IMG/VR virus record: IMGVR_UViG_3300042484_002457
Location: 1 to 64,000 of that record
Strand: one strand, 5' to 3'
Length of the DNA: 64,000 bases
The translations under genes were made by a program, and so were the position numbers. The notes beneath the pieces are model-generated. The model made no database searches and had not been told where the DNA came from. It worked only from the letters and a program-made list of their open reading frames with translations. The stretch's first letter is position 1. The number at the start of each line of letters is the position of its first letter. Below, in pieces: positions 3-56,261 of this stretch.

Positions 3-971
3 ACAAGTACCCCTAACTCAGACGAAGACCAGTTTGCTTATATCTGGAAGGGTGCCAACAAGATTGAAGACGAATTTGGCAATCTGCGACCCAATGGCCT
101 TGGCATCAACGGTTTCAAAGCGTTTCGCGCTTTCTGGCGCGAGCATCCAGATCGTGATGATAAGTGGGCCGAAGAACAGCGTAGCCAACTGGGAGATGAA
201 CGTTTCCGTCGTGAAATGGACTGTGATTTTGTTATCAATGATGAAACATTGATTGCTCCTATCAAGCTGCTGGAAATAGAAGGGGTAGAACCCATACGTA
301 AAACAGGGCAAGTGCGTTGGTATCGCAATATAGAGCCTGACAAAATGTATATTGTTGCCCTTGACCCAAGCCTGGGCACAGGCGGAGATCCTGCAGCCAT
401 ACAGGTGTTTGAAGCAGACACCACACACCAAGTAGCAGAATGGCGCCACAATCGCAGTGATATCCCCACACAGATCAAGACCATGGTTGATATCATCAAA
501 GAGCTTCATTTGGTGACAAAGAACGAAAAACGCATTTACTTTTCAGTAGAGAACAATACCATTGGTGAAGCTGCACTGTTGAGTATTGCAGAATACGGGG
601 AAGAAAACATTCCTGGATACTTTTTGAGTGACAACAGTGTGGTAACTGGAACCAGCAGAAAGTTTCGCAAAGGGTTCAACACCACGCACAAGTCCAAGCT
701 CACAGCTTGCAACAAGTTTAAAATTCTAGTGGAATCTGGACGTATGAAAATATACTCCAAGCCCTTGGTTACTGAACTCAAAACATTTGTGGCTTCAGGC
801 ACTAGTTTTGCAGCAAAACCCGGAGAAACAGACGATCTTGTGATGTCAAGTTTGCTGGCAACTCGCATGCTGTTGCTGCTGCAAAGCTATCATACCGAGC
901 TTGACAGTCACCTCAAAGACCACACAGACAGCATAATTGAGCCTTATCCGTTCATAGCACTGCTTCGATAA
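3..971 (+). CDS. Terminase large subunit (T4 gp17-like), C-terminal part; 5' end lies outside the window
   Basis: Frame is open from nt 3 (TSTPNSDEDQF...WREHPDRDDKW...RFRREMDCDF). RNase H-like nuclease motifs VALDPSLGTGGD, VENNTIG, GFNTT and DDLVMS. Confidence 0.9.
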   Translation, partial: TSTPNSDEDQFAYIWKGANKIEDEFGNLRPNGLGINGFKAFRAFWREHPDRDDKWAEEQRSQLGDERFRREMDCDFVINDETLIAPIKLLEIEGVEPIRKTGQVRWYRNIEPDKMYIVALDPSLGTGGDPAAIQVFEADTTHQVAEWRHNRSDIPTQIKTMVDIIKELHLVTKNEKRIYFSVENNTIGEAALLSIAEYGEENIPGYFLSDNSVVTGTSRKFRKGFNTTHKSKLTACNKFKILVESGRMKIYSKPLVTELKTFVASGTSFAAKPGETDDLVMSSLLATRMLLLLQSYHTELDSHLKDHTDSIIEPYPFIALLR

Positions 972-981
972 ATACACAACC

Positions 982-3471
982 ATGGCTACACAAAACACTA
1001 TTGAACAACAATTACAAGACACTCTTGCCACCCGGAATTTTGAAACAGAAATGCTGGGCGCAGATGGTAAACCTACAAATCAAGTACAAGACGCAAAAAC
1101 TTTTACTTTTGATTATGTGTCAGGATCAGGTAAAAACTACGGAACCATGGTCATTGTGCTTGATACTGACAATGACATGAAAATCATGTACGGTGACAAT
1201 CTGGGACGTACCATGGAGCCACAAGACAAAGATGAATTCTTTGATTTTCTAGAGCACATGGGACTCTTGGCTCGTCGCAATCGTTGGACACGTACCACAC
1301 AAGATATAAACCAACTCAAGTACACCATGCAAGGTCTTGCAGCCATCAAAGAAGGCTTGTTTGAAGGTTACTATGGTAATCGAATTGTGAGCTACAGCGG
1401 CCAGCCCACTGAAGCCAGACTCATGATCCGACACAGTCAACAGCTAGGTGAGGATGATGCTAGATATCGTCACGTGGAAAGTATTTTTATTGAAACCACT
1501 GACGGTGAAAGATTCAAACTAGAGTCTCGTAGTTTGTCAGCAGCCCGTGCCATGCTGGAACATGTGCGTCAGGGTGGCAAGCCCTATGATGTACGTGGCA
1601 GTCATATTACAGAAATGATACGAGAAGTTGCAGTATTGAGCAGATTCAATCGTGCCAGCAGCCGTCGTGTAATGGAAGGTGTCACACAGCAAATTGTAGA
1701 ACAGGCCCAGCATTACTACAAACAACTGCGTGAAAACATCAAACATCTAGCAGCACCACGTGGATACAAATCTTATTTTGAAACATGGCATCCTGCAACA
1801 ATAACTGAGCAGGATGAGTTGGTTGAAGGTATCAAGAATTTATTCATTGAGCAACGTATTGATTCCAGAATTGAAGAAGCTTTACCGTTGCTGGCTAGAT
1901 TACAAAAACAAGGACAAGATATGAAAGAAATTAAAATGTTTGAATCTTGGGTAGAGACCCTGGGCGAAGGCACTTGGGCATTGCCCGACGACCCCGAAAC
2001 TCAGCAAAAGCTCAATGACCTAATGGCCAAAGAACTCATTGTTGGCCCCGACGCTACCAATGCTACTGAACAATTATATGATGTGGTTGGCGACGATGAA
2101 TTGTTTGACATACTACAAGACCTAGCACAGAGATCTGATGGTCGCGCCAACGTCTGGGACGATACTGATGTTCAACGTAGATTGAAAGAACTTGGAGTTC
2201 AATTGCCTACACCCAGTGCAGGTCTTGAGCAACCAGCACCTACTCCCCCAGCAGGCGGCGCACCTGGTGCAGCATCCCCTCCAATGATGGAAGCAATCTT
2301 GGACGAGAGTGGCGAAACACTGGACCATATTTTGAGTAGATTCAAAAATGAAGTCAAGCGATTTGAAACTGGCGACGACTTGGACAATGATTTGTACTAT
2401 GCACTGTTTGACTATTACTCAGACGCTGGCGAAATACCTTATGGTATTGCCAAAGGTCGCGACGGTGACCCGTATGAGTGGATTACTGATCGACTTGATC
2501 AGGAATTGGGCACTGGCAACTATGCACCACGATTGCCTGAAGCTGATAACATGGCCACTTTTGTTGAAGGCAACGGCTGTAACATGACCATGGAAGGCGA
2601 ATATTGTCCAGAACACGGTTTAATGGAATGTGGCATGATGGAAATGGGAACAGTAGCCGGCGGTGTAGCTACTGTAATGGGCGAACAAGACACAGCCGAA
2701 GGCATGTTGGGTAATCCAGGGCAAGAAGACAGCCCAGCTGCACAAGCAATCACACGTAGAATTTTGATGCAACGCACAGACTTGCTGGCCAAGTACGGTC
2801 CAGAAAAAGTTATGAGTGCTATTGACGAAGTTGCTGACTTTGTGGGCGATGTAGACGAGATTGGAAGTAGTGATGTTTCAGGTTGGGTTCGACAGGTAGA
2901 GCAAATGCTGGGCAACATGAAACAAGGCATGGCTGAAGGCTCAGGAACAAACAAAACACATTTAGCAATGGCATATCTAAAAGCAGTAGTCATGGCTCCT
3001 ATGGGAACCCCAGAAAAAAGAAGAATACTAAATTGGCAACAGATACTATCAAATCAATTTGATATCGAAATGGATCCTGCTACCCTTGCTCAAATGCTAC
3101 CACAACTTGACAGTCAGTTACAGTCAGGCAATCTGGATAAACTACAAAACCGAATGGCTAGTCGTGGCGAACTTGAAATAGGCGAGAGCGAGCAAGGTGT
3201 GGCGGAGGTTAGTGATGCTACGCTAACCAGTTATCTAACAAAATTAGATAAAGATAATCTTAAACACAGAATGGATCCCACAAAACGCAGTGACACAAAA
3301 CGCATGAAAAGTGGTCCTAATTTTGTTAAAGCGTTTACCAAATTGGATAATAGAAAGCAAGGTGTGGCGGAGGCTGATGATCCGATCAACTACAATGCAG
3401 CCATAACCGGCAGCTATTATGAATCTCAAGATCCATTGGCAAGAATAAAATCGCTAGCCCTGCGCAAGTGA
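982..3471 (+). CDS. Large acidic modular protein, probable virion head/internal protein
   Basis: 829-aa ORF; TAAATA 7 nt upstream; C-terminal modules delimited by QG[VM]AE motifs. Confidence 0.55.
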   Translation: MATQNTIEQQLQDTLATRNFETEMLGADGKPTNQVQDAKTFTFDYVSGSGKNYGTMVIVLDTDNDMKIMYGDNLGRTMEPQDKDEFFDFLEHMGLLARRNRWTRTTQDINQLKYTMQGLAAIKEGLFEGYYGNRIVSYSGQPTEARLMIRHSQQLGEDDARYRHVESIFIETTDGERFKLESRSLSAARAMLEHVRQGGKPYDVRGSHITEMIREVAVLSRFNRASSRRVMEGVTQQIVEQAQHYYKQLRENIKHLAAPRGYKSYFETWHPATITEQDELVEGIKNLFIEQRIDSRIEEALPLLARLQKQGQDMKEIKMFESWVETLGEGTWALPDDPETQQKLNDLMAKELIVGPDATNATEQLYDVVGDDELFDILQDLAQRSDGRANVWDDTDVQRRLKELGVQLPTPSAGLEQPAPTPPAGGAPGAASPPMMEAILDESGETLDHILSRFKNEVKRFETGDDLDNDLYYALFDYYSDAGEIPYGIAKGRDGDPYEWITDRLDQELGTGNYAPRLPEADNMATFVEGNGCNMTMEGEYCPEHGLMECGMMEMGTVAGGVATVMGEQDTAEGMLGNPGQEDSPAAQAITRRILMQRTDLLAKYGPEKVMSAIDEVADFVGDVDEIGSSDVSGWVRQVEQMLGNMKQGMAEGSGTNKTHLAMAYLKAVVMAPMGTPEKRRILNWQQILSNQFDIEMDPATLAQMLPQLDSQLQSGNLDKLQNRMASRGELEIGESEQGVAEVSDATLTSYLTKLDKDNLKHRMDPTKRSDTKRMKSGPNFVKAFTKLDNRKQGVAEADDPINYNAAITGSYYESQDPLARIKSLALRK
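2923..3373 (+). repeat. In-frame direct repeats encoding QG[VM]AE
   Basis: AGCAAGGTGTGGCGGAGG is identical at 3191-3208 and 3356-3373; degenerate CAAGGCATGGCTGAAGGC at 2923-2940. Confidence 0.85.
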
Positions 3472-18914: not shown

Positions 18915-20380
18915 AACAAGCAACCATTGTTATCCGCGACGAAGTAAACATCAAAATTGAGGGCTTGGATCTTGACATGCGCAAGCGCCTGGTCACAGCA
19001 TTCAAATACGAAAACCCTGCCGCACGTTACATGCCAGCGGTGCGTCTAGGAAGATGGGACGGCAAGATAGCATACTTCCAGTTAGGAGGCAGTACCTACA
19101 CAAACTTGCTACCTGAAATCATTCCCATCCTTGAGAAGTTTGATTATGATATTGAACTGGATGACCAACGCGACTATTCAAACACTTTTAACTTTGAACA
19201 GGTACGTGAGGATTCATTTGCACATGTGAAGTGGCCCAAAGGACACCCTGCCACAGGTGAACCCATAATGATGCGGGACTACCAGGTTGAAATCGTAAAC
19301 AACTTTTTAGCCAATCCGCAATGCCTGCAAGAAGTAGCAACAGGTGCAGGTAAAACAATCATGACAGCGGCCCTGAGCAATGCAGTTGCACCTTATGGGC
19401 GAAGCATTGTGATTGTGCCCAACAAGAGTCTAGTAACACAAACAGAAAAAGATTACATCAACATGCAACAAGATGTTGGTGTTTATTTTGGCGATAGAAA
19501 AGAGTACGGCCGCACTCACACTATTTGCACCTGGCAGAGTTTGAATATCTTGTTAAAGAATACCAAGGCAGGGGTAGGCGACTGTACCATTGGTGAGTTC
19601 CTTGAAGGCGTTGTATGTGTTATTGTAGACGAAGTACACATGGCCAAGGCAGATGCACTGAAAACTCTGCTGACAGGTGTAATGGCTAGAGTGCCAATTC
19701 GCTGGGGTTTGACCGGAACTATTCCCAAAGAGAAGTTTGAGAGTCAAGCATTGTTAGTAGGACTTGGTCCTGTAGTTGGTCGCTTGAGTGCCAACGAACT
19801 GCAACAGCAAGGTGTTTTGGCCAACTGTCACGTGAATATTGTGCAACTGGTAGATCATGTGGAGTACAAAGAATATCAAAGCGAGCTTAAATACTTGCTG
19901 GAAGAGTCGGGTCGTTTAGACACCATGGCTGAACTTATACGCAAGGTAAACGAAACTGGAAATACGTTGGTGTTGGTTGACAGAGTTGCGGCGGGCCACG
20001 CATTATTAGAACGCCTAGGCGATTGTGCTGTGTTTGTATCGGGCGCAACAAAAGGAACAAAAAGACAAGAAGAATATGACAAAGTTGCGGACAGCGTTGA
20101 TAAGATTATTGTGGCTACCTATGGTGTTGCCGCTGTGGGCATTAACATCCCTAGGATTTTTAATCTGGTTCTTATTGAACCTGGAAAAAGTTTTGTCCGT
20201 GTTATCCAAAGCATTGGCCGCGGCATAAGAAAAGCAGAGGACAAGGATCATGTTCAAATTTGGGACATTACCAGTACCTGCAAGTTTGCCAAACGTCATT
20301 TGACCAAACGCAAGGCCTTCTATAAAGAAGCTAACTATCCTTTCTCTGTAGAAAAGCTGGAGTGGATGAAAATAGCATAA
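18911..20380 (+). CDS. uvsW: UvsW-like SF2 DNA helicase
   Basis: RDYQ, ATGAGKT, DEVH, GLTGT, VGINIP, QSIGRGIR. Confidence 0.92.
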   Translation: MKQATIVIRDEVNIKIEGLDLDMRKRLVTAFKYENPAARYMPAVRLGRWDGKIAYFQLGGSTYTNLLPEIIPILEKFDYDIELDDQRDYSNTFNFEQVREDSFAHVKWPKGHPATGEPIMMRDYQVEIVNNFLANPQCLQEVATGAGKTIMTAALSNAVAPYGRSIVIVPNKSLVTQTEKDYINMQQDVGVYFGDRKEYGRTHTICTWQSLNILLKNTKAGVGDCTIGEFLEGVVCVIVDEVHMAKADALKTLLTGVMARVPIRWGLTGTIPKEKFESQALLVGLGPVVGRLSANELQQQGVLANCHVNIVQLVDHVEYKEYQSELKYLLEESGRLDTMAELIRKVNETGNTLVLVDRVAAGHALLERLGDCAVFVSGATKGTKRQEEYDKVADSVDKIIVATYGVAAVGINIPRIFNLVLIEPGKSFVRVIQSIGRGIRKAEDKDHVQIWDITSTCKFAKRHLTKRKAFYKEANYPFSVEKLEWMKIA

Positions 20381-21191
20381 GTTTTTTGCAGTTATCACCA
20401 TGCCAGCGATTGTAATTTGACTGTCCCCCAACTATACTAACGCAATGCGGGCACTTAAATTTAGGCTTTGGTCCTTGTAGTTTAGCAACTGTTTCTGCGG
20501 AATGTGCAACTCCTCGGTTGTGCGCAGGCTTACCTACTAACCAAGTTGGCGTCTTCCCTTTTTTAGCGTCAGACATTTTTTGTCTCGATTCAACAGTGTG
20601 CGTGGTTGTTTTTCCTTTGTTACCAGCAGATATCTTTTGTTTTGTTTCTTCTGAATGTCGATAGTGCTTGCGTGATTCTAAAATTTTAGCAACTGTTTCG
20701 GGAGAAGTAATTTTACCTTTATGTGCTGCTGACAATTTTTGTTTTGCTTCGGCAGAATGTGTTTTTCCTTTAAAAGCTGACAGCCTGCCTGCGCAAGATT
20801 TAGACAGTTTTTCTCTTGTCTCTTTGGATACAGTTTTACCTTTGTGCAATTGTGATGAGTTTTTTGCCACTTCTATCTTGGCAAGATTGAAAGCACTTCC
20901 TTTGGATATTTTTCTTTGTTGGGCAACATTTTTTGTTCTTAACATCATCCACAGTGCATACCACATACTTTTTGTATGAGCAGGATCAATGGTCATCCGA
21001 GGTAATAAAATATGAACAAGGCGATGTTCTTTTGCAGTAAGTCTTATTAGATTATTTTGATCATTTGCCCCACCTAGACTTTTTGGGATAATGTGATGTT
21101 TTTCTGTATAAGTTTCTTTTGGCAAATCTCTTGACTTTGCACGATTAATGATGCTATAATAACATTTAGTATATTTGTTTTGTAAATACAT
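20331..21191 (-). mobile_element. Free-standing HNH homing endonuclease with NUMOD3 repeats and C-terminal Zn ribbon
   Basis: EKHHIIPKSLGG.N...NL..LT.KEH...H; repeated H(S/T)xE(T/A)+xK+S; CPHC...RWHGDNC; antisense to the operon. Confidence 0.85.
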
Positions 21192-21260
21192 GGCTGATAG
21201 TTCCTTGTAAACTGTTAGAGTCAATGGATCCTGCAAGATCGCGATTGACATTTTTATTTA
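21192..21260 (-). promoter_or_regulatory. Conserved two-hairpin endonuclease leader, copy A, with TAAATA promoter
   Basis: TAAATA-AAAAT-GTCAAT-CGC-GATC-ttgcag-GATC-C-ATTGAC-TCTAAC-AGTT-tacaagg-AACT-ATCAGC-C-ATG. Confidence 0.8.
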
Positions 21261-21775
21261 TGACGGAGAAAAAAATTCGGATCCTCACACTAGACAACAG
21301 TCACTACGACCTAGATCATCTGCCTGAAGAAATTGATGACATGCGTTTTGCTATCTTGGACAACAGCAATCCTGCAGATCCTGATTATCTTTTTATCCCG
21401 CTAATTTTTCTAGAGAGTTTTAACAGCCCTGCTTTGGTACTGCGCATTGGTACACAAACAATCAAGATGCCCATGGATTGGCAGGTACTAATTGGTGAAC
21501 CTGATGTAGGCGATCTAGAAGTGTTACCACTGACATCAATCAACGATCGCGGCTTTAAAGTATTTCAATTCAATCCCCTTACCAGCTATCGCCCCAGCTT
21601 TCCTGACATTGAAATTTTAGATGTGTATCATGATGTTTCATGGTACGCACCCAAACTCAAGAACGGACAAATGCTAGCAGTACCCATTAACGATGAACCT
21701 GAACCTGACTGTATCTATTTTGTAAAAGACGTCAGCCGCAACTGCGAAATTGTCAACTACAACAAGGCTTGGTGA
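21260..21775 (+). CDS. Conserved-looking phage hypothetical protein
   Basis: RILTLDN...MRFAILDNS...FIPLIFLESF; start taken at ATG 21260. Confidence 0.7.
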   Translation: MTEKKIRILTLDNSHYDLDHLPEEIDDMRFAILDNSNPADPDYLFIPLIFLESFNSPALVLRIGTQTIKMPMDWQVLIGEPDVGDLEVLPLTSINDRGFKVFQFNPLTSYRPSFPDIEILDVYHDVSWYAPKLKNGQMLAVPINDEPEPDCIYFVKDVSRNCEIVNYNKAW

Positions 21776-37682: not shown

Positions 37683-37708
37683 AGCAAATAACTTTGATAA
37701 ATAAAGTT

Positions 37709-38473
37709 ATGAAAAATCTATGTAACTGTGGTTGTGGTATTCCTCTAAGAAAAGATAACAAAACTGGATATCAAAAAGGTCACAAGCCTTGCCCTGTATG
37801 CGGAACTCTTGTTAAAGGGTCAGGAATAGAATGCTGTTCAAAATCTTGTGCAGCAAAGTTGCATTGGCAGCGAAATCCAGATATGAAAGAGTCACGAATA
37901 TGGAATGCTGATCGGTATGCGACTCGAGAAAAAAATAGAGACACCTGGACTAAAAAGTTGTCTGACTCTTGCAAAGGCAGAATACCTTGGAATAAAAATA
38001 CACAAGGATTACAAACAGCCTGGAACAAAAACTTACCAGCCAATCAGCAACCGTTTTACGGCAAAACTCATAGTGCAGAATATTATCAAAAACGGGACAA
38101 AACTGTTTTTGAAAAATACGGCGTTGCCTGTGCCCTTGAATTAGCAAAAACATCTCCGAGAAGCAAAAAAGAAAAACTCTTAGAAAATGTGTTAGTTGGA
38201 TATCAATCAAATAAGCGAGTGGGTAGATACAAACCTGATTACGTAAATGAAACCACAAAACACATAGTTGAAGTTTATGGTGATTATTGGCATTGTAATC
38301 CAACTGTATTCAAAGAAGATTTTTATCATCCTCAGTTAAAGAAAACTGCCAAAGAAAAATGGCAATTGGATTTTGAAAGACAGACCAGCCTGGAATCAAT
38401 GGGATATAATGTTACTATTGTTTGGGAGAGTAAGTTGGAAGAATTTATAAAACAATATGATAACGTTCACTGA
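37709..38473 (+). mobile_element. Inserted Vsr/DUF559-like PD-(D/E)XK endonuclease with N-terminal Zn fingers (putative homing endonuclease)
   Basis: AT-rich; CNCGCG, CPVC, CCSKSC; PDY...IVEVYGDYWH...D..R...L...GYNV.IVWE; separates iscU from iscA. Confidence 0.75.
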
Positions 38474-44659: not shown

Positions 44660-45760
44660 ATGTCAAAACAACAATATGATTTAAAAACAAAAACAGACTA
44701 TCTCAATAGAAAGATGTTTCTAGACCCAGCAGGGCCAGTTACCATTCAACGATTTGAGGAGGTTAAATATCAGAAACTAGTCAAGTACGAACAAGAAGCA
44801 CGTGGCTTCTTCTGGGTACCAGAAGAGATCTCATTAACCAAAGACTCACAAGATTTCAAAGACGCTAGTGATACTGTCAAGCACATCTTTACATCAAACT
44901 TGTTACGCCAAACTGCCTTGGACAGTTTGCAAGGACGTGGTCCCAGCCAAATCTTTACACCTGTTGTTTCAATTCCTGAACTGGAAGCCTTGGTCTACAA
45001 CTGGACATTCTTTGAAACAAACATTCACTCACGCAGTTACAGTCACATTATACGTAACATCTACAACGTGCCCAAGGATGTGTTTAACACCATCCATGAC
45101 ACACAAGAAATTGTGGACATGGCCAGTTCAGTTGGCAACTACTACGAAGCATTGCACATGGTCAACTGTCGTAAGCAACTAGGCGAGTCTGTTACAGAGC
45201 ACGAACATATTCGAGCAATCTATATGGCTCTACATGCTAGCTATGCGCTAGAAGCATTCCGCTTCATGGTTAGCTTTGCCACAAGTCTTGCCATGGTAGA
45301 GAATCGCATCTTTATGGGCAATGGTAATATTATTGGGCTAATCTTACAAGACGAGATTCTGCACAAAGAATGGACAGCTTGGTTGATCAATCAAGTGGTC
45401 AAAGAAGATCCGCGCTTTGCCAAGGCCAAAGTAGAATGTGAAGCTGAAGTGTACCAGATGTACTTGGATGTGATCCGTGAAGAAAAAGCCTGGGCTGAAT
45501 ACTTGTTCAAGAAGGGTCCAGTTATTGGTCTTAATGCAAATATTCTTAAAGACTTTGTGGACTACACAGCAGTAGGTGCACTGAAAGAAATTGGCATCAA
45601 GTATCTTGAGCCTGCTCCGCGTAACACACCAATCCCGTGGTTTAACAAGCATGTGGACACAAGCAAGAAACAATCGGCCTTACAGGAAAACGAATCAACC
45701 AATTATGTAATTGGAGCGATGAGCGAGAATATTGATTACGACGAGTTACCAAATCTATGA
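44660..45760 (+). CDS. nrdB: Ribonucleotide reductase class Ia beta subunit
   Basis: FFWVPEE, LDSLQGR, ETNIHSRSY, LEAFRF..SF, DEILH, QE.E...Y. Confidence 0.96.
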   Translation: MSKQQYDLKTKTDYLNRKMFLDPAGPVTIQRFEEVKYQKLVKYEQEARGFFWVPEEISLTKDSQDFKDASDTVKHIFTSNLLRQTALDSLQGRGPSQIFTPVVSIPELEALVYNWTFFETNIHSRSYSHIIRNIYNVPKDVFNTIHDTQEIVDMASSVGNYYEALHMVNCRKQLGESVTEHEHIRAIYMALHASYALEAFRFMVSFATSLAMVENRIFMGNGNIIGLILQDEILHKEWTAWLINQVVKEDPRFAKAKVECEAEVYQMYLDVIREEKAWAEYLFKKGPVIGLNANILKDFVDYTAVGALKEIGIKYLEPAPRNTPIPWFNKHVDTSKKQSALQENESTNYVIGAMSENIDYDELPNL

Positions 45761-46053
45761 TATTGTCAAGACTGGAGTTTATAGATTACTTCAAAACTTT
45801 AGACTCCAGGATTGACGGCAACGATCCTGATTGTCCGCTGTGGATACCCGAGCATGATAGCAAACCATCTAGTTGGTTTGTGCGAGTAGTACCCATTAAG
45901 GCACATAGATTCAAGCGGAAATATTACGATTGGTGCAACAACACACTAGCAGATGTTGTTCGCTGTTATAGCAGTGATCCAGACCACCAACAAGAGTGGT
46001 GGGGATTTACCAATCAAAAGGATATTGTACCATGGTTGTTAAAGTGGTCTTAA
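45757..46053 (+). CDS. Hypothetical protein
   Basis: 98 aa, ATGA overlap with nrdB. Confidence 0.6.
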
Positions 46054-46689
46054 AATCCATCCTTTAACAACTTTGCGTTTTGCCTTAACTAAGTTGTTCA
46101 CGCCGCCACTGTCGAGCTTATATGTAGTTCGAAAGTCATACTGAGTCATACTAACTTCCTCGTTGGTGATGGTATTAAAGAAACAATATATAGTATGATC
46201 ATACCGTACACTGCCTGAACCAGTATATAATTTGCGATATAGATCTTTGTTTTTCTGACTGTGCCCCGGATTAGCAGGCCCGGACATACGTAAGCTAGCA
46301 GACAGATTAGTACGACCAAGCAAAGATGTGCTAGTATTTGGGCGTTTTTGTCCTGTTTGTTTTTTTATGTTTATAGCAACACGATGGGCGATTTGTTCTT
46401 TAGTTTGTTTCATCCCGCAAGATCCGTCGCCGCCGTTTGTTTTATTTCGAAGAATACCTGTGCCAATATCTTTGCGACCATACCAGCGTATCATCCTGCG
46501 TTCAATAGCTAACGCACCAACATCGGTTAGATTACTTTCAAGTATTATAATTCTTGAACGATCAACTGGAGGATGAACTTCGCCTTTTCCTTTGATCCAG
46601 GCTCGACGATCTTTGCCTTTTCCTATATAATAAGGAGTTCCGTCTTCTCGCAAATATGCATAGACGTAAAAATTGTTAGTTAAATACAT
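46039..46689 (-). mobile_element. Free-standing GIY-YIG homing endonuclease
   Basis: [34 protein letters not shown](D/E)G; antisense to the operon. Confidence 0.85.
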
Positions 46690-46756
46690 TGCTGATGTTC
46701 CTCCAGAACGTTAGAGTAGTTGGGAACGCCAATTCCGCGAACTACACCTATATTTA
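46690..46756 (-). promoter_or_regulatory. Conserved two-hairpin endonuclease leader, copy B, with TAAATA promoter
   Basis: TAAATA-TAGGT-GTAGTT-CGC-GGAA-ttggcg-TTCC-C-AACTAC-TCTAAC-GTTC-tggag-GAAC-ATCAGC-A-ATG. Confidence 0.8.
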
Positions 46757-46773
46757 TGAAAGAAAATAAAAAT

Positions 46774-49726: not shown

Positions 49727-49758
49727 AAAGACCCTGCAAGCAGCAGGGTCTTTCTTTT
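49727..49758 (+). terminator. Rho-independent terminator
   Basis: AAAGACCCTGC-aagca-GCAGGGTCTTT-CTTTT. Confidence 0.88.
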
Positions 49759-49760
49759 GG

Positions 49761-49789
49761 TTGACCCAAATTTTCCAATTTGCTATAAT
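49761..49789 (+). promoter_or_regulatory. sigma70-like early promoter
   Basis: TTGACC-N17-TATAAT; spacer nearly identical to the one at 16289. Confidence 0.85.
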
Positions 49790-49973: not shown

Positions 49974-50108
49974 ATGAGTTTACTCAGAGGCGGAAAGACA
50001 GGTGCTGATCCCGGACTTTTGCAGGACGATTCTAGGGCCCTGTTCCGCTGGTTTGCTTCGCGGTTGGACTCTCGCTGGACACTCCGCAGAGTCTTGACAG
50101 AATATTGA
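49974..50108 (+). CDS. Small hypothetical protein (44 aa, not in ORF track)
   Basis: TAAGGAG SD; MSLLRGGKTGADPGLLQDDSRALFRWFASR... Confidence 0.6.
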   Translation: MSLLRGGKTGADPGLLQDDSRALFRWFASRLDSRWTLRRVLTEY

Positions 50109-50122
50109 TTTGGTGTTATAAT
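50094..50122 (+). promoter_or_regulatory. sigma70-like early promoter
   Basis: TTGACA-N17-TATAAT with extended TG. Confidence 0.85.
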
Positions 50123-52173: not shown

Positions 52174-52400
52174 GCAAACGCATTGGACCTATTACATTGG
52201 ACGGCGACGCAGCTGATCGCATCACTGTGCTCACGCTGAAAGAACAACGATCCTACCTCAAGAAAGAACTTGCAGAGTGGAAGAAAAATCCACGTACAGA
52301 TACCAATCCTGAGGGTGTTTGGATGCACCCTGAAGACGTGGAACTCAACACTCGCATGATTGAATCGTTGAACACTGTGATCAAATACTTTGGCGGATAA
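52170..52400 (+). CDS. Hypothetical protein
   Basis: 76 aa, coupled to the ligase. Confidence 0.65.
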   Translation: MSKRIGPITLDGDAADRITVLTLKEQRSYLKKELAEWKKNPRTDTNPEGVWMHPEDVELNTRMIESLNTVIKYFGG

Positions 52401-53034
52401 ATGAACAACGATCAAAGTGCCAACGAGTCATAGCAGATATTCCTCCAGTTTTGCTGCAATGCGGGCAAGTGGCTAATGGTTTAGATTTTCCTCTATTGCT
52501 ATTACCAATTTTTTCTTTTGTTTCTTCAGAAATAACTTGCAACGATCTTGCCGCCTTAATTTTTTGTTTAGTTTCATTGGTATGAGCTCGGTGGTGTCCG
52601 GTCCCTTTTCCAGTTCTTCCTTTGCTAATTTTTATCCTATCACCAACTGATCGAGTCTTGCCTTTCCAGAAACCAACTGCACCCTTGTGTCCTTTGTTCG
52701 GAGGGGGTCGTCCAAGCCCTGCAATAGAAATCTTATTTCTTGATTCGGCGCTTAATTTTCCTCGGGCATCACCAGTTTCTTCTTTAAGATTAGCCCATTC
52801 ATTGCTTTCGACTATATTCCAAAGATTACTATAAAACAATCCCCAGTATGAAAATTCATCTTTAGTATGACACTCTTTTATAATTTCTGTGCGATAATCT
52901 TTTCCGTGTTTTTTTAAATGTGATTTCCAATAAGTGCCTGATCCAGGATACTTGTGAGGATCTTTTGACTCGGTCTTGCCAAGATATTTGAGACCAGTAA
53001 CATTGTGGGTTTTGACGTACAGGTAAATAGTCAT
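52381..53034 (-). mobile_element. Free-standing GIY-YIG (Seg-like) homing endonuclease with NUMOD3 and C-terminal Zn ribbon
   Basis: IYLYVKTH..TGLKYLGKT, Y.GSG.YW..HL.KHG, WANL.EE.G; CPHC...RWHFDRC; antisense to the operon. Confidence 0.85.
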
Positions 53035-53103
53035 GCTGATTGCTCCTTGTTAGCGTTAGAGTAGTTGGGGAGGTGAGATACCCGCGAACTACACTTCTAT
53101 TTA
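53035..53103 (-). promoter_or_regulatory. Conserved two-hairpin endonuclease leader, copy C, with TAAATA promoter
   Basis: TAAATA-GAAGT-GTAGTT-CGC-GGG-tatctcacct-CCC-C-AACTAC-TCTAAC-GCT-aacaagg-AGC-A-ATCAGC-ATG. Confidence 0.8.
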
Positions 53104-53107
53104 TCTC

Positions 53108-53136
53108 TTGACTTTAATCTACGTGTTGTGTATAAT
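53108..53136 (+). promoter_or_regulatory. sigma70-like early promoter
   Basis: TTGACT-N17-TATAAT. Confidence 0.8.
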
Positions 53137-53163
53137 GTAAGTTCAAACATTGAAAGGCATGTT

Positions 53164-53562
53164 ATGCGTATAGGATTGAGTCTTAGTCGTTGCGTTCGCG
53201 ATATTGTTGAGGGTCAAGTCAACATTGATGATGTGTTGATACTGATCACTCGCACTGACTTTGACCCTACAGTTCCGGAACAATGGGACAGCATTTGGGA
53301 TGGGTACACCTCAATGAATCCTGAGTGGTACGGCCTGGAGCATGACGCTGTGTACGCAGTTGTTATGAAGTTGTGGTCCACTGGTCGCATTCATCAACCC
53401 CGCAAGTTTGGATATAATCCACCTCGCCGGCGAGAGTTTTGGCTGGAAACTGTGTTGCCTGATTCAGAACTGGCGTCGCGTCCTGCTGTGAAAGAAGCTT
53501 GGGATCAGTTTCAAATGCTAGCCGGTCTTACCAACACCAAACTGGACAAGAACTATCAATGA
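53164..53562 (+). CDS. Hypothetical protein
   Basis: MRIGLSLSRCVRDIV...GRIHQPR.FG. Confidence 0.7.
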   Translation: MRIGLSLSRCVRDIVEGQVNIDDVLILITRTDFDPTVPEQWDSIWDGYTSMNPEWYGLEHDAVYAVVMKLWSTGRIHQPRKFGYNPPRRREFWLETVLPDSELASRPAVKEAWDQFQMLAGLTNTKLDKNYQ

Positions 53563-54547: not shown

Positions 54548-54871
54548 ATGTCTGTTAATATTGAAACCGCTGCCGGTAACGGTACGTTGCAGTCTCTTGA
54601 CCCGCTTAAAACAACGACCGATGCTATGCACCTATATCGCGTCGTGGTTGAATTGGAAAATACTGATGAATGGTATGCCATCATCCGCGAAGCACAACGA
54701 CTGTTTGGCCCTGGAAACTGGGACAGTCAACCCAGAGTAAAACGCAAGCTAGAACGCAATCGCTGGACCCAAGCCAAGGTTCGAGTTTGGTTTGATGTTC
54801 CTGAGGTCAGTTTTGGTACCTGGGTTGGTGTTAAACTAGCAGTTAGGGTGCTGAGTGTGGCCAATAAATAA
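54548..54871 (+). CDS. Hypothetical protein
   Basis: AAGGA SD; 107 aa. Confidence 0.65.
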   Translation: MSVNIETAAGNGTLQSLDPLKTTTDAMHLYRVVVELENTDEWYAIIREAQRLFGPGNWDSQPRVKRKLERNRWTQAKVRVWFDVPEVSFGTWVGVKLAVRVLSVANK

Positions 54872-54875
54872 TCTT

Positions 54876-56261
54876 ATGTTCCTCAGTTATATTACTTTGG
54901 CAGTTGCACTAAGCCTGTCAGTTATTGCCGCCTACTACTCCATTGCTGGCCTCACCGCAATCTTTGCCGCTGCTGTGATCCCTATTGTGATCATGGGTGG
55001 CATATTGGAAGTGGGCAAAGTTGTAGTTACCCTGTGGCTGCACGAGTACTGGCAACAGTGTCGTTTGCTGATGAAAATGTACCTGGTTCCAGCTGTGGCT
55101 GTGCTGATGCTGATCACCAGCATGGGCATTTTTGGTTTCTTGAGCAAGGCACACAGTGATCAAAGCATGGTATCAGGAGACGTGCAGGCCAAGATTGCAG
55201 TCTACGACGAAAAAATAAAAGTATCACAGGACAACATTGATGTTAATCGCAAAGCACTTAAACAGCTCGATGAGGCGGTGGATCAAAGCATGGCACGCTC
55301 GACAACAGAAACGGGTGCTGACAAAGCAGTGGCCATCCGTAAGTCGCAAGCAAAAGAAAGATCTAGACTACTGGCTGAAATTGCAGCCGAACAGAAAACA
55401 ATTAGTGCTCTTAGACAAGAACGAGCACCCATATCGGCCGAAGTACGAAAGGTTGAAGCCGAAGTTGGACCTATAAAATACATAGCCAAGTTGATCTACG
55501 GGGACAACCCCGATGCCAACCTGCTGGAAAAAGCAGTGACCTGGGTTATCATTGTGATTGTTGCGGTGTTTGATCCATTGGCTATCATGATGTTGTTGGC
55601 TGCAACAGAAAGTTTGAAGTGGGGGCGAGAAAAGCGATTGGCGCCGCAACCAACAGAATCCAACAGTGAACCAGAAGTAGAGGAACAGCCACCTGCAGAA
55701 CCAGAACCTGAAAAATCTATACTGGAACAACATCCGTACCTTACCCAAGGATTTGCGCACTTTACAGACTTGCAGCCCATAGTACACAAACCTGAGCCAA
55801 AAATTGATCCAGTGCCGGTTGAAGTTGCTCAGTCAGTAGAAGATGAAGAAGAGCGACCTGAGGTACAAGATGCAATTCGTCGATGGAAAGCAGAGAATCC
55901 CAACGACACATTGAAAAATCAGCGAGCACGCCTGGCACGTGGGGAAATTGACGAGCTGCCTTGGATGCAGTTGATCCAAGTATTGCCAGCTGCCACTAAC
56001 TCAGGGTATGGGAATCAGTTCCCGGGTAATGCCAACAAAGGCGACATATTTGTAAGAATTGACAAACTGCCCAATTTGGTCTATAAGTACAATGGTAATA
56101 ACTGGATTAAAATTGACAAAAATCTAACAGACAGTTACACTTATGATGTTGCCTACATTGATCACCTAATTGACAGAATCAGTTGTGGTGAGTACGACAC
56201 CGAGCTTTTGAGCGAAAGCGAAAAAGAACAAGTTAAACAACGTTTAGAAAATCGAGCATGA
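54876..56261 (+). CDS. Membrane-anchored coiled-coil protein
   Basis: N-terminal TM helices (AAYYSIAGL, TSMGIFGFLSKAH), coiled coil, EAEVGPIKYIA, TM VFDPLA; TAAATA 5 nt upstream. Confidence 0.75.
   Translation: MFLSYITLAVALSLSVIAAYYSIAGLTAIFAAAVIPIVIMGGILEVGKVVVTLWLHEYWQQCRLLMKMYLVPAVAVLMLITSMGIFGFLSKAHSDQSMVSGDVQAKIAVYDEKIKVSQDNIDVNRKALKQLDEAVDQSMARSTTETGADKAVAIRKSQAKERSRLLAEIAAEQKTISALRQERAPISAEVRKVEAEVGPIKYIAKLIYGDNPDANLLEKAVTWVIIVIVAVFDPLAIMMLLAATESLKWGREKRLAPQPTESNSEPEVEEQPPAEPEPEKSILEQHPYLTQGFAHFTDLQPIVHKPEPKIDPVPVEVAQSVEDEEERPEVQDAIRRWKAENPNDTLKNQRARLARGEIDELPWMQLIQVLPAATNSGYGNQFPGNANKGDIFVRIDKLPNLVYKYNGNNWIKIDKNLTDSYTYDVAYIDHLIDRISCGEYDTELLSESEKEQVKQRLENRA

Follow-up and report, generated by a model that had tools for sequence, protein, structure and literature searches.

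What is encoded by the block of about 70 bases that precedes three selfish nuclease genes in a large T4-like phage, and on which strand does it act? The window examined here is a stretch of 64,000 nucleotides (positions 1 to 64,000 of IMG/VR record IMGVR_UViG_3300042484_002457). The original prediction described a covarying two-hairpin RNA leader on the nuclease strand, carrying invariant linkers, a predicted late start site at about the first base of stem P1 and a Shine-Dalgarno (SD) sequence caged in stem P3, and proposed that it was a portable regulatory RNA (protein-binding operator, riboswitch-like element or mobility signal) of selfish elements with interchangeable nuclease domains. The block is real and was found as described, apart from some details. 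The interpretation is only partly supported: the element is portable, structured and covarying, but the strand is probably wrong, and the structured molecule is most likely an antisense transcript, inferred at present from sequence alone, which would represent an undescribed RNA family.

Three copies of the block

The three nuclease genes and the boxes on their own strand are as follows.
20331 to 21191, minus strand: copy A cargo, a free-standing HNH + NUMOD3 homing endonuclease gene (Pfam HNH and NUMOD3, phrog_655; ATG at 21191), the last 50 nt of which overlap the 3′ end of the convergent uvsW-like gene.
21255 to 21261, minus strand: copy A sense promoter box ATAAATA (predicted), followed by N5 and the G at 21249, the predicted +1 of the nuclease mRNA; on the plus strand the same bases are the U-rich tail.
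46039 to 46689, minus strand: copy B cargo, a GIY-YIG-like (Seg-like) endonuclease gene (phrog_15526; ATG at 46689), in the same cluster and alignment as the copy C gene; its predicted sense promoter box is the complement of 46751 to 46757.
52381 to 53034, minus strand: copy C cargo, a predicted GIY-YIG + NUMOD3 endonuclease gene (NUMOD3, phrog_314; ATG at 53034), the last 20 nt of which overlap the 3′ end of the upstream flank gene; its predicted sense promoter box is the complement of 53098 to 53104.

On the nuclease strand all three copies read TAAATA-N5-P1(6 bp)-CGC-P2(3-4 bp)-loop-P2′-C-P1′-TCTAAC-P3-ATCAGC-N0-1-ATG. The pattern TCTAAC-N8-20-ATCAGC occurs three times in the window, where 0.04 occurrences are expected, and a covariance model run with filters off recovers only these three copies, at 66-84 bits, the next hit scoring 15 bits. 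Covariation in a larger alignment and the absence of an Rfam family had been named beforehand as tests of the motif, and both came out in its favor. Across 111 distinct copies from elsewhere, all 14 pairs change on both sides, with a covariation score of 0.617 compared with 0.220 for shuffles and at most 0.10 for slid partners. No Rfam 15 family matched at its gathering score on either strand of the whole window, and a search of copy B in E-value mode returned only chance hits (E ≥ 0.97), far below gathering scores.

Certain details require correction. The linkers are nearly invariant rather than invariant, the variants including CAC, TCTAAT, TTTAAT, TCTATG, ACCAGC, CACAGC, and ATCAAC; the SD is only half inside a weak P3 helix of 3-4 bp; and a fourth helix (linker with linker) and a second promoter box had been missed.

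Distribution and mobility

The block occurs in more than 250 places in IMG/VR phage contigs. Among bacterial genomes 24 pattern matches were found, of which only five are real by covariance model, all on MAG contigs that are probably phage. In INPHARED, megablast of the region and blastn of two leaders revealed no near relative, the only real hit being a diverged copy in cultured Rhizobium phage RHph_I1_18 (around MN988519 80283-80370), which makes the idea testable at the bench. In the loci every copy is followed within 0-2 nt by an ORF, nearly always a free-standing nuclease (GIY-YIG, HNH, TnsA-like PD-(D/E)xK or NUMOD3-only), or else a 40-aa ORF; the block marks a family of nuclease cassettes with interchangeable catalytic domains.

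The block is part of the inserted cassette, as shown by empty-site alleles at all three sites. The copy A cargo is absent from 75 of 80 related loci at its site and the copy B cargo from about 77 of 80, while at site C the empty-site alleles (L229, L230, and L231) have the two flank genes 2 nt apart. A general intergenic repeat beside which nucleases merely insert is rejected, since there are no orphan copies in the window and the empty-site alleles lack the block.

Strand of the helices

On the nuclease strand P1 shows 630 Watson-Crick cells, 30 A.C and no G.U; of 39 distinct P1 haplotypes, 19 carry A.C and none carries G.T. On the complementary strand the A.C mismatches are G.U pairs, and the helix is 99.7-100% paired there. 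Many copies share ancestry, and cell counts therefore overstate the number of independent events; mutation bias was judged insufficient to account for 19:0 haplotypes. The variant of CGC to CAC provides a further G.U, again on the complementary strand only.

The linkers TCTAAC and ATCAGC pair with each other only on the complementary strand, as GCUGAU/GUUAGA with two G.U. In 93 copies ascertained on P1 and P2 alone, without fixing the linkers, this helix (P4) covaries and is 100% paired, the pair types being CG81/UA12; UA93; GU93; AU63/UA14/GU10/CG3/GC3; and UA52/UG14/CG11/AU9/GC6. The near-invariance of the linker bases, including a G.U which never changes in 153 copies, is more than pairing needs, and hints at an unknown partner or at a sense-strand constraint. 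The whole antisense structure comprises 19 covarying pairs, with 98.6% standard pairs and a score of 0.571, compared with 0.187 for shuffles and at most 0.10 for slid partners, on a MAFFT alignment which was not fitted to the structure; across both alignments standard pairs amount to 98.6-99.0%. The complementary RNAs fold better than shuffles (z −2.0 to −3.2), whereas the sense leaders do not (z −0.45 to −1.4).
21193 to 21260, plus strand: copy A predicted antisense RNA, consisting of G; stem-loop 1, CUGAU+AGUU/AACU+GUUAG with the anti-SD loop CCUUGUA; A; stem-loop 2, GUCAAU-G-GAUC-loop-GAUC-GCG-AUUGAC; and the tail AUUUUUAUUUA (MFE −17.0 kcal/mol, z −2.57).
46691 to 46756, plus strand: copy B predicted antisense RNA, with stem-loop 1 (loop CUCCA), stem-loop 2 and the tail ACCUAUAUUUA (MFE −18.6 kcal/mol, z −3.21).
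53035 to 53103, plus strand: copy C predicted antisense RNA, with stem-loops 1 and 2 and the tail ACUUCUAUUUA (MFE −21.1 kcal/mol, z −2.01).

These data bear upon the sense-strand model, in which a 5′-terminal P1/P2 hairpin stabilizes the late mRNA or binds a protein and P3 cages the SD, the whole working as a translational operator or riboswitch-like element. In its favor, the promoter box places +1 at the first base of P1, 72% of P1 helices are fully Watson-Crick and would also form in the mRNA, P3 covaries and holds half of the SD, and T4-family homing endonucleases (I-TevI, Aeh1 mobE) use late promoters and RBS hairpins. However, A.C but never G.U is tolerated in P1, only P3 forms around the SD on the sense strand, P4 has one or two A.C mismatches there in nearly all copies, and the model gives no reason for the second promoter box described below. 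An mRNA helix which occludes the SD, as in T4 homing endonucleases, is not supported, and we consider this explanation unlikely.

A DNA-level element, in which the hairpins form in single-stranded DNA of the plus strand (where G.T is tolerated) and serve recombination, homing, replication priming or cassette exchange, or in which the repeated block acts as a recombination site that shuffles nuclease cargos, appears very unlikely. The strand asymmetry would hold for single-stranded DNA as well, identical blocks precede unrelated cargos, P2 hairpins occur as exact reverse complements of one another, as in replication-slippage loop inversions, and PeSLs have been proposed as recombination points (PMC4122927). 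By contrast, the element coincides exactly with two promoter boxes, an SD, and a U-tail after a hairpin, all transcript-level features; homing by double-strand-break repair needs no specific end sequences; and nothing here indicates a nicking or binding site. A hammerhead-like core (CUGAUGA) in the antisense RNA was also rejected, since the bases after CUGAU vary with P3, there is no GAAA element, and there is no Rfam hit.

Two inverted putative promoter boxes

A second (A)TAAATA-N5-G box lies inverted inside the first codons of the nuclease gene.
21183 to 21188, plus strand: copy A predicted antisense promoter box TAAATA, inside codons 2-3 of the HNH gene (TATTTA on the gene strand), 4 nt before GCUGAU.
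46681 to 46686, plus strand: copy B predicted antisense promoter box TAAATA, in codons 2-3 of the nuclease gene.
53024 to 53029, plus strand: copy C predicted antisense promoter box TAAATA, inside codons 2-4 of the nuclease gene, 5 nt before GCUGAU.

TATTTA is found 4-7 nt after ATCAGC in 90 of 108 leaders, against a background of 2.5e-4 per nt; 14 of the 108 have TACTTA instead. It occupies all three reading frames (51/20/18), and stays at offset 5 while the ATG offset varies between 0, 1, and 2. It is therefore not a by-product of the GIY "IY" codons, being present in HNH genes too and anchored to ATCAGC rather than to the ATG. In the 93 copies ascertained on P1 and P2 the antisense box is present in 91, with 5 nt to the G in 76 and A at −1 in 72, mirroring the sense box; the two inverted boxes, 64-70 bp apart, occur together in 90-91 of the 93. 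The box is also kept in 15 of 17 copies where the nuclease gene runs the same way as both neighbors and no flank transcript could use it.

The assignment of both boxes as promoters rests on analogy with T4 gp55 promoters and on positions in this window. The T4-type late promoter is a TATAAATA-like box about 6 nt before +1 with no −35 element; here the box is (A)TAAATA, and the T at −8 of T4 is not kept. ATAAATA-N5-7-ATG precedes virion-protein genes in the window, which supports the promoter and +1 assignment, and a late-type start at the first base of P1 is plausible. At site B the cassette ends right at the box, so no upstream element is needed. No gp55 homologue lies in the window, although the related RHph_I1_18 encodes one.

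Possible termination and sigma-70-like outward promoters

Stem-loop 2 (6+1+4 bp, mean −9.3 kcal/mol) is followed by an imperfect U-tail with the consensus ACUUUUAUUUA (ACCUAUAUUUA in copy B); a simple terminator scan does not flag the hairpin because the stem is bulged. A sigma-70-like promoter starts 10-19 nt after the tail in 38 of 177 copies (21%) compared with 4 of 177 controls; the same order of hairpin, U-tail and promoter is seen at site C but not at sites A and B.
21131 to 21160, plus strand: sigma-70-like promoter TTGACT-18-TATAAT (TG-extended) inside the 5′ coding region of the HNH gene, pointing across the block toward the flank gene that starts at 21260, the native promoter of which was lost on insertion.
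53108 to 53166, plus strand: outward sigma-70-like promoter TTGACT-17-TATAAT (53108-53136), SD AAAGG (53153-53157) and ATG (53164) of the flank gene, all inside the inserted segment and directly after the hairpin and U-tail.
A promoter such as that inside the HNH gene is present in only 20 of 102 copies, mostly of the HNH subfamily, and is thus not the general antisense promoter.

These observations raise the possibility, which we regard as doubtful, that the block is solely an opposite-strand terminator or insulator, a PeSL-like composite cassette. In this view the hairpins would end or stabilize read-through transcripts of the flanking early or middle genes after these have crossed the nuclease gene in antisense, an outward promoter would restart the flank gene, no discrete regulatory small RNA would be made, and the TATTTA box would serve something else. 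The nuclease gene is antisense to both neighbors in 52 of about 116 contexts, against 20 where it runs the same way as both; P1 types with A.C are commoner in the former arrangement (19 of 43 against 3 of 17); and the order of hairpin, U-tail and sigma-70-like promoter matches the terminator-promoter order of PeSLs (PMC4122927). This view does not explain stem-loop 1 with its anti-SD loop, why the conserved structure begins one base after a TAAATA-N5 box, or why that box is retained in all reading frames and in same-orientation contexts. Furthermore, at sites A and B the flank gene has no promoter after the hairpin, and an efficient terminator would silence it; the geometry there argues for leaky termination at most.

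Proposed mode of action

The explanation which we favor, with moderate confidence, is that the block is a compact regulatory module working on both strands, which travels with free-standing homing-endonuclease genes of T4-like and jumbo phages and represents the overlap of two convergent late-type promoters. On the nuclease strand it would supply a T4-type late promoter and a short leader with the SD. On the opposite strand the inverted box would start an RNA of roughly 65 nt with a 5′ G, stem-loop 1 (P4 plus P3, presenting an anti-SD loop), stem-loop 2 (P1 and P2), and a U-rich tail that is the complement of the sense promoter. The predicted RNA is fully complementary to the mRNA from its +1 to just before the AUG, and would start pairing loop to loop at the SD, then block ribosome binding or expose the duplex to RNase III, keeping nuclease synthesis low and dependent on copy number. 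Its hairpin and U-tail would also stop transcription coming through the gene in antisense from the flanking operon, and in about a fifth of copies an outward sigma-70-like promoter follows and would restart the flank gene. The helices, their strand asymmetry, the two boxes with their spacing, and the inclusion of the block in the inserted cassette are established by the analysis, whereas the firing of both boxes, the existence of the small RNA as a discrete species, and its repression of the nuclease are inferences.

A more far-reaching possibility, which is speculative and on balance unlikely, is that the block is a self-contained small-RNA gene captured as a shared governor by homing endonucleases of at least three unrelated folds. 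Since all cassettes in a genome keep the same single-stranded and wobble positions (an invariant G.U and near-invariant GCUGAU/GUUAGA), each small RNA could act in trans on every other cassette, or be read by one phage or host protein. This would give genome-wide, copy-number-sensing control of all selfish nucleases in a phage, a regulatory commons for mobile elements with helices built from G.U pairs so that they exist on one strand only.

How phages tolerate many homing endonucleases has been explained case by case, through late promoters, RBS hairpins, and autorepression. Here one conserved 70-bp module accompanies hundreds of nuclease genes of different folds in abundant uncultured T4-like and jumbo phages, and its evolutionary signature points to an antisense RNA. 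If confirmed, this would be a new phage RNA family for Rfam, the first general antisense control system for homing endonucleases, and a clean natural example of G.U/A.C asymmetry used to place a helix on one strand of a bidirectionally transcribed segment. The block also marks free-standing nuclease cassettes and late promoters in metagenomic phage contigs.

Comparison with known systems

The literature searches that were run found no description of this motif. The proposed arrangement resembles RNA-IN/RNA-OUT control of the IS10/Tn10 transposase, in which two face-to-face promoters give transcripts overlapping at their 5′ ends, the antisense partner is a short, highly structured RNA, the overlap covers the RBS or start of a gene for a DNA-cutting enzyme of a selfish element, and the expected outcome is low expression limited by copy number. 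There is no sequence or structural homology; here the putative promoters are phage late-type boxes, the predicted overlap is about 60 nt rather than 35, the predicted antisense RNA has two hairpins and a U-tail, and the cargo is a homing endonuclease. The CfrI antisense RNA of cyanophage S-PM2 (Millard et al. 2010, as summarized in PMC2984593) likewise overlaps a homing-endonuclease gene of a T4-like phage and is thought to regulate it, but it is about 225 nt, runs antisense to the endonuclease gene and psbA, linking the two, is not a conserved 65-nt module at the 5′ UTR, and is not reported with several nuclease families.

The PeSL composite promoter-terminator cassettes (Arbiol 2010; Comeau 2014, PMC4122927) are also small, repeated, mobile regulatory cassettes of T4-like genomes; they combine a stem-loop terminator with a promoter, as the block may do in the 21% of copies where a sigma-70-like promoter follows the hairpin, and both may serve as exchange points for cargo. 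PeSLs, however, use early sigma-70 promoters, run the same way as the genes they flank, and are scattered through hyperplastic regions without being tied to nucleases, whereas this block has two convergent late-type boxes and a second hairpin with an anti-SD loop, and its only three copies in the 64-kb window all stand before nuclease genes. Control of I-TevI and Aeh1 mobE shares with the proposed model a late promoter directly upstream, a small hairpin involving the SD, and the aim of delaying or limiting nuclease synthesis, but those hairpins act in the sense transcript, whereas here the helices are perfect only on the complementary strand and one conserved family is shared by unrelated nucleases. 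Type I toxin-antitoxin and plasmid antisense systems (hok/sok, CopA/CopT) are comparable with the proposed model in that a cis-encoded structured antisense RNA targets the translation initiation region of a potentially harmful gene, and loop-loop recognition is plausible; in the present case there is no addiction logic and no evidence that RNA stabilities differ, and the context is a lytic phage.

Predicted fold of the copy B and C nucleases

The GIY-YIG label which the original prediction gave to the copy B and C genes is not provided by Pfam or NCBIfam, and sequence searches of the PDB with both gave no hit. It is supported by structural modeling: an AlphaFold model of the copy C protein, built from a 49-sequence alignment that includes the copy B protein, has a pLDDT of 83.5, and its top PDB fold match is the I-TevI catalytic domain (1mk0; probability 1.00, TM 0.67 on the target).

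The Three Window Copies

Reading the minus strand upstream of the three nuclease genes, and re-reading the plus strand, showed the architecture described in the original prediction. In copy A the predicted promoter box (cATAAATA) and a spacer (aaaat) are followed by helix P1 (GTCAAT/ATTGAC), which encloses cgc, helix P2 (GATC/GATC, with the loop ttgcag) and a single c, and then by the linker TCTAAC, helix P3 (AGTT/AACT, with the loop tacaagg), the linker ATCAGC, a further c, and the ATG. Copies B and C possess P1 GTAGTT/AACTAC, P2 GGAA/TTCC or GGG/CCC, and P3 GTTC/GAAC or GCT/AGC. The pattern TCTAAC-N8-20-ATCAGC occurs three times, where statistically 0.04 are expected, and a covariance model (R1) run without filters recovered these three copies at 66–84 bits and nothing else above 15 bits, so that there are no orphan copies in 64 kb.

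Gene A is an HNH + NUMOD3 homing endonuclease. Gene C carries NUMOD3 and matches phrog_314, whereas gene B matches only unnamed PHROGs; genes B and C fall in one cluster, and a structural model of gene C (pLDDT 83.5) best matches the GIY-YIG catalytic domain of I-TevI. All three genes lie antisense between plus-strand replication genes, namely a uvsW-like helicase, nrdB and a glutaredoxin-like gene, and DNA ligase. On the basis of UvsW (about 50% identity) the nearest cultured relatives are jumbo T4-like phages such as Sinorhizobium phage Phosso, Pseudomonas phage PA5oct, and Agrobacterium phage Atu_ph07; no near DNA relative was found in INPHARED.

Distribution and Covariation

An exact pattern fixing the promoter box, CGC, and both linkers hit at least 120 IMG/VR contigs, giving 107 distinct leaders when the window is included. 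R1 subsequently revealed 23 more copies in the same loci that do not fit the pattern, five true copies on MAG contigs, and a diverged copy in the cultured Rhizobium phage RHph_I1_18, a T4-like phage with an annotated late sigma factor. The latter copy (locus L121, 2494–2590, equivalent to MN988519.1 about 80283–80379; 47 bits with covariance model R2) precedes EVB91_137, which is annotated as hypothetical but looks GIY-YIG-like (MTIYQPYTYLIGW). Its linker helix is of the CUAGA/UCCAG type, and a TATTTA box lies 12 nt from CCAGC.

Every copy is followed within 0–2 nt by a start codon. The cargos include about 64 GIY-YIG-like genes and 30 HNH genes, further GIY-YIG families that Pfam recognizes, two TnsA-like PD-(D/E)xK nucleases with a zinc finger, a NUMOD3-only protein, and a conserved ORF of about 40 amino acid residues. 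The TnsA-like endonucleases (L032, 4037–4597, minus strand; L039, 1725–2660, minus strand), one of which has an N-terminal C2H2-like zinc finger, represent a third nuclease fold used as a free-standing phage cassette. The short ORF (…WQ.KN…F.TP.) takes the place of a nuclease after four copies of the block (L003, 1177–1299; L055; L067; and L093), and is either a decayed gene or a different small cargo.

Among 111 distinct copies, all 14 pairs of the proposed P1, P2, and P3 change on both sides, with a covariation score of 0.617 against 0.220 for shuffles and at most 0.10 for slid partners. No match was found in Rfam. P2 hairpins also occur as exact reverse complements of one another in many copies, for example window 46723–46736 versus L001 (GGAA-TTGGCG-TTCC against GGAA-CGCCAA-TTCC), as do the loops TTGACG and CGTCAA; this indicates loop inversions. 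Most loops carry a YUNR-like UUGG or CUGG on one strand or the other. The observation behind the original prediction therefore holds. Its interpretation is supported in part: the idea of a portable element shared by unrelated nucleases stands, but its placing of the structure in the nuclease mRNA leader is not supported.

Which Strand Is Structured

Three independent findings point away from the nuclease mRNA. Firstly, every non-Watson–Crick cell in P1 is A.C or C.A (30 cells, in 19 of 39 distinct haplotypes), with not one G.T. In RNA of the nuclease strand A.C does not pair and G.U does, so that the observed bias is the reverse of what a sense helix would tolerate; on the complementary strand the same positions are G.U.

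Secondly, folding of the plus strand of the three window copies reveals that the two linkers, which had been described as invariant, pair with each other there. GCUGAU pairs with GUUAGA (C-G, U-A, G.U, A-U, U.G), stacking on P3 to give an 8–9 bp stem-loop whose loop is the anti-SD, whereas on the sense strand the same bases give two A.C mismatches. A second IMG/VR scan, in which only the commonest P1 and the base of P2 were fixed and the linkers were left free, returned 93 distinct copies in which this helix (P4) is 100% paired on the plus strand and covaries, the pair types being CG81/UA12, UA93, GU93, AU63/UA14/GU10/CG3/GC3, and UA52/UG14/CG11/AU9/GC6. In a MAFFT alignment of 60 diverse copies in antisense orientation the full 19-pair structure shows 98.6% standard pairs and a score of 0.571, against 0.187 for shuffles and at most 0.10 for slid partners. 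The common CGC to CAC variant adds yet another G.U on that strand only.

Thirdly, the plus-strand RNAs of the three copies fold better than shuffles (z −2.57, −3.21, and −2.01), whereas the sense leaders do not (z −1.43, −1.17, and −0.45). The sense-leader model of the original prediction is consequently considered unlikely.

A Second Predicted Promoter Box

In 90 of 108 leaders the hexamer TATTTA, the reverse complement of the promoter box TAAATA, lies 4–7 nt after ATCAGC, inside the first codons of the nuclease gene; in 14 of the 108 the sequence is TACTTA instead. The hexamer occupies all three reading frames (51/20/18), is found in HNH as well as GIY-YIG genes (MYLQ, MIFI, MxIY), and stays at offset 5 from ATCAGC while the offset of the ATG varies between 0, 1, and 2. 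Its background frequency in the gene bodies is 2.5e-4 per nt. In the set ascertained on P1 and P2, the antisense box is present in 91 of 93 copies, with exactly 5 nt to the G of GCUGAU in 76 and an A at −1 in 72, and the sense box is present in 90 of 93 with the same −1 preference.

In the window, ATAAATA stands 5–7 nt before the ATG of several genes, including two virion-structural-protein genes:
968–984, plus strand, ATAAATA and the ATG that follows
37697–37711, plus strand, ATAAATA and the ATG that follows
54864–54878, plus strand, ATAAATA and the ATG that follows
25476–25461, minus strand, ATAAATA and the ATG that follows

This supports both the promoter role of the box and a +1 about 6 nt downstream, and implies leaderless or nearly leaderless late mRNAs in this phage. 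The conserved block is thus exactly the interval between the predicted +1 of the sense transcript (the first base of P1) and the predicted +1 of an antisense transcript (the G of GCUGAU). The A-rich N5 and the sense box, read on the other strand, form the tail ACUUUUAUUUA directly after stem-loop 2. In many loci where the nuclease gene runs in the same direction as its upstream neighbor (for example, at upstream distances of −7 to +7), the stop codon of that neighbor often lies within or at the TAAATA box.

A further promoter-like sequence, sigma-70-like and TG-extended (window 21131–21160, plus strand), is encoded on the antisense strand of the conserved HNH motif K-Y-T-x-x-Y-Y-S-I-I. It recurs at the same place in related HNH genes (seven cases), and may represent dual coding.

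The Block Belongs to the Mobile Cassette

Relatives of the flank genes mostly lack the block, this being true for 75 of 80 at site A, about 77 of 80 at site B, and 3 of 6 close relatives at site C. The relevant window features are:
About 20381–21277, the insertion at site A
21260–21280, plus strand, the start of the site A flank gene after the insertion
About 45756–46046, plus strand, an ORF of about 96 residues at site B
52401–53163, the insertion at site C

At site A the empty alleles (loci L207, 3464–3502; L211; L210; and L216) have the uvsW stop followed by TTGACT-17-TAATAT-6-ATG, which implies a leaderless flank gene and looks like a leaderless early mRNA. The insertion in the window removed that promoter and changed the first codons of the flank gene, which now reads ATG ACG GAG AAA AAA ATT CGG. 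The ancestral ATG position is now ATT, preceded by GGAG at a good SD distance, and hence the real start may be either ATT or the new SD-less ATG at 21260. In L154, L159, L165, and L180 the same site between uvsW and the flank gene holds other insertions of 0.6–2.2 kb that lack the block, so that this is an insertion hot spot with several cargo types.

At site B, nrdB and the glutaredoxin-like gene are 17 nt apart in empty alleles, and the insertion ends right at the (A)TAAATA box. The ORF of about 96 residues overlaps the nrdB stop (ATGA) and fills the space between nrdB and the 3′-end of nuclease gene B; it is absent from the empty-site alleles L263 and L320, and is therefore part of an insertion. 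At site C the two flank genes are 2 nt apart in empty alleles, and the insertion brings the nuclease gene, the block and, directly after the tail on the plus strand, TTGACT-17-TATAAT plus an SD for the flank gene.

This order of hairpin, tail, and outward sigma-70-like promoter recurs in 38 of 177 copies against 4 of 177 control regions, with the −35 element starting 10–19 nt after the tail begins. In the loci the nuclease gene is usually antisense to both neighbors (52 cases, against 20 where it runs the same way as both), although this rests on crude ORF calling. The TATTTA box is kept in 15 of 17 same-orientation contexts.

Interpretation and Comparison with Known Systems

The best-supported reading is that of a bidirectional module, with a late promoter and short leader for the nuclease on one strand and, on the other, a predicted two-hairpin RNA of roughly 65 nt with its own late-type promoter and a terminator-like end. 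That RNA is fully complementary to the SD region and presents the anti-SD in a loop. By analogy with IS10 RNA-OUT, CopA, and Sok, it would repress translation or trigger cleavage of the nuclease mRNA, while its hairpin and tail would also end or attenuate antisense read-through from the flanking operon. G.U pairs are the only way to have a helix on one strand and not on its complement, and the invariant central G.U of P4 may serve to keep the SD-occluding helix from forming in the mRNA while it forms in the antisense RNA. The helices, their strand asymmetry, the boxes, the spacing, and membership of the cassette are established by the sequence comparisons, whereas the firing of the promoters, the existence of a discrete small RNA, and repression are surmised in the absence of transcript data. 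Against this reading, the tail is imperfect, the hairpin must be leaky at sites A and B, where the flank genes depend on transcripts crossing it, TACTTA replaces TATTTA in the minority of leaders mentioned, and the linkers are conserved more strongly than pairing requires. A pure terminator or insulator of the PeSL kind (PMC4122927) remains possible though less likely, while a DNA-level hairpin or recombination site appears very improbable.

The functional analogue is IS10 RNA-IN/RNA-OUT. Within T4-like phages the only reported antisense RNA linked to a homing endonuclease is CfrI of S-PM2, which is about 225 nt in length, has a different geometry, and is of unknown function (PMC2984593). The literature searches that were run found no description of the present motif, and there is no Rfam family. 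Cis-antisense logic is already known; what is new, pending transcript evidence, is an abundant RNA family that applies it to homing endonucleases. PeSL cassettes share the composite promoter-terminator idea, but they use early promoters and are not tied to nucleases. What the phage's own terminator-promoter junctions look like is shown at window 49727–49763 (plus strand), where a canonical strong intrinsic terminator (an 11-bp stem, then CTTTTGG) is followed by two near-consensus sigma-70-like promoters at 49761–49789 and 50094–50122.
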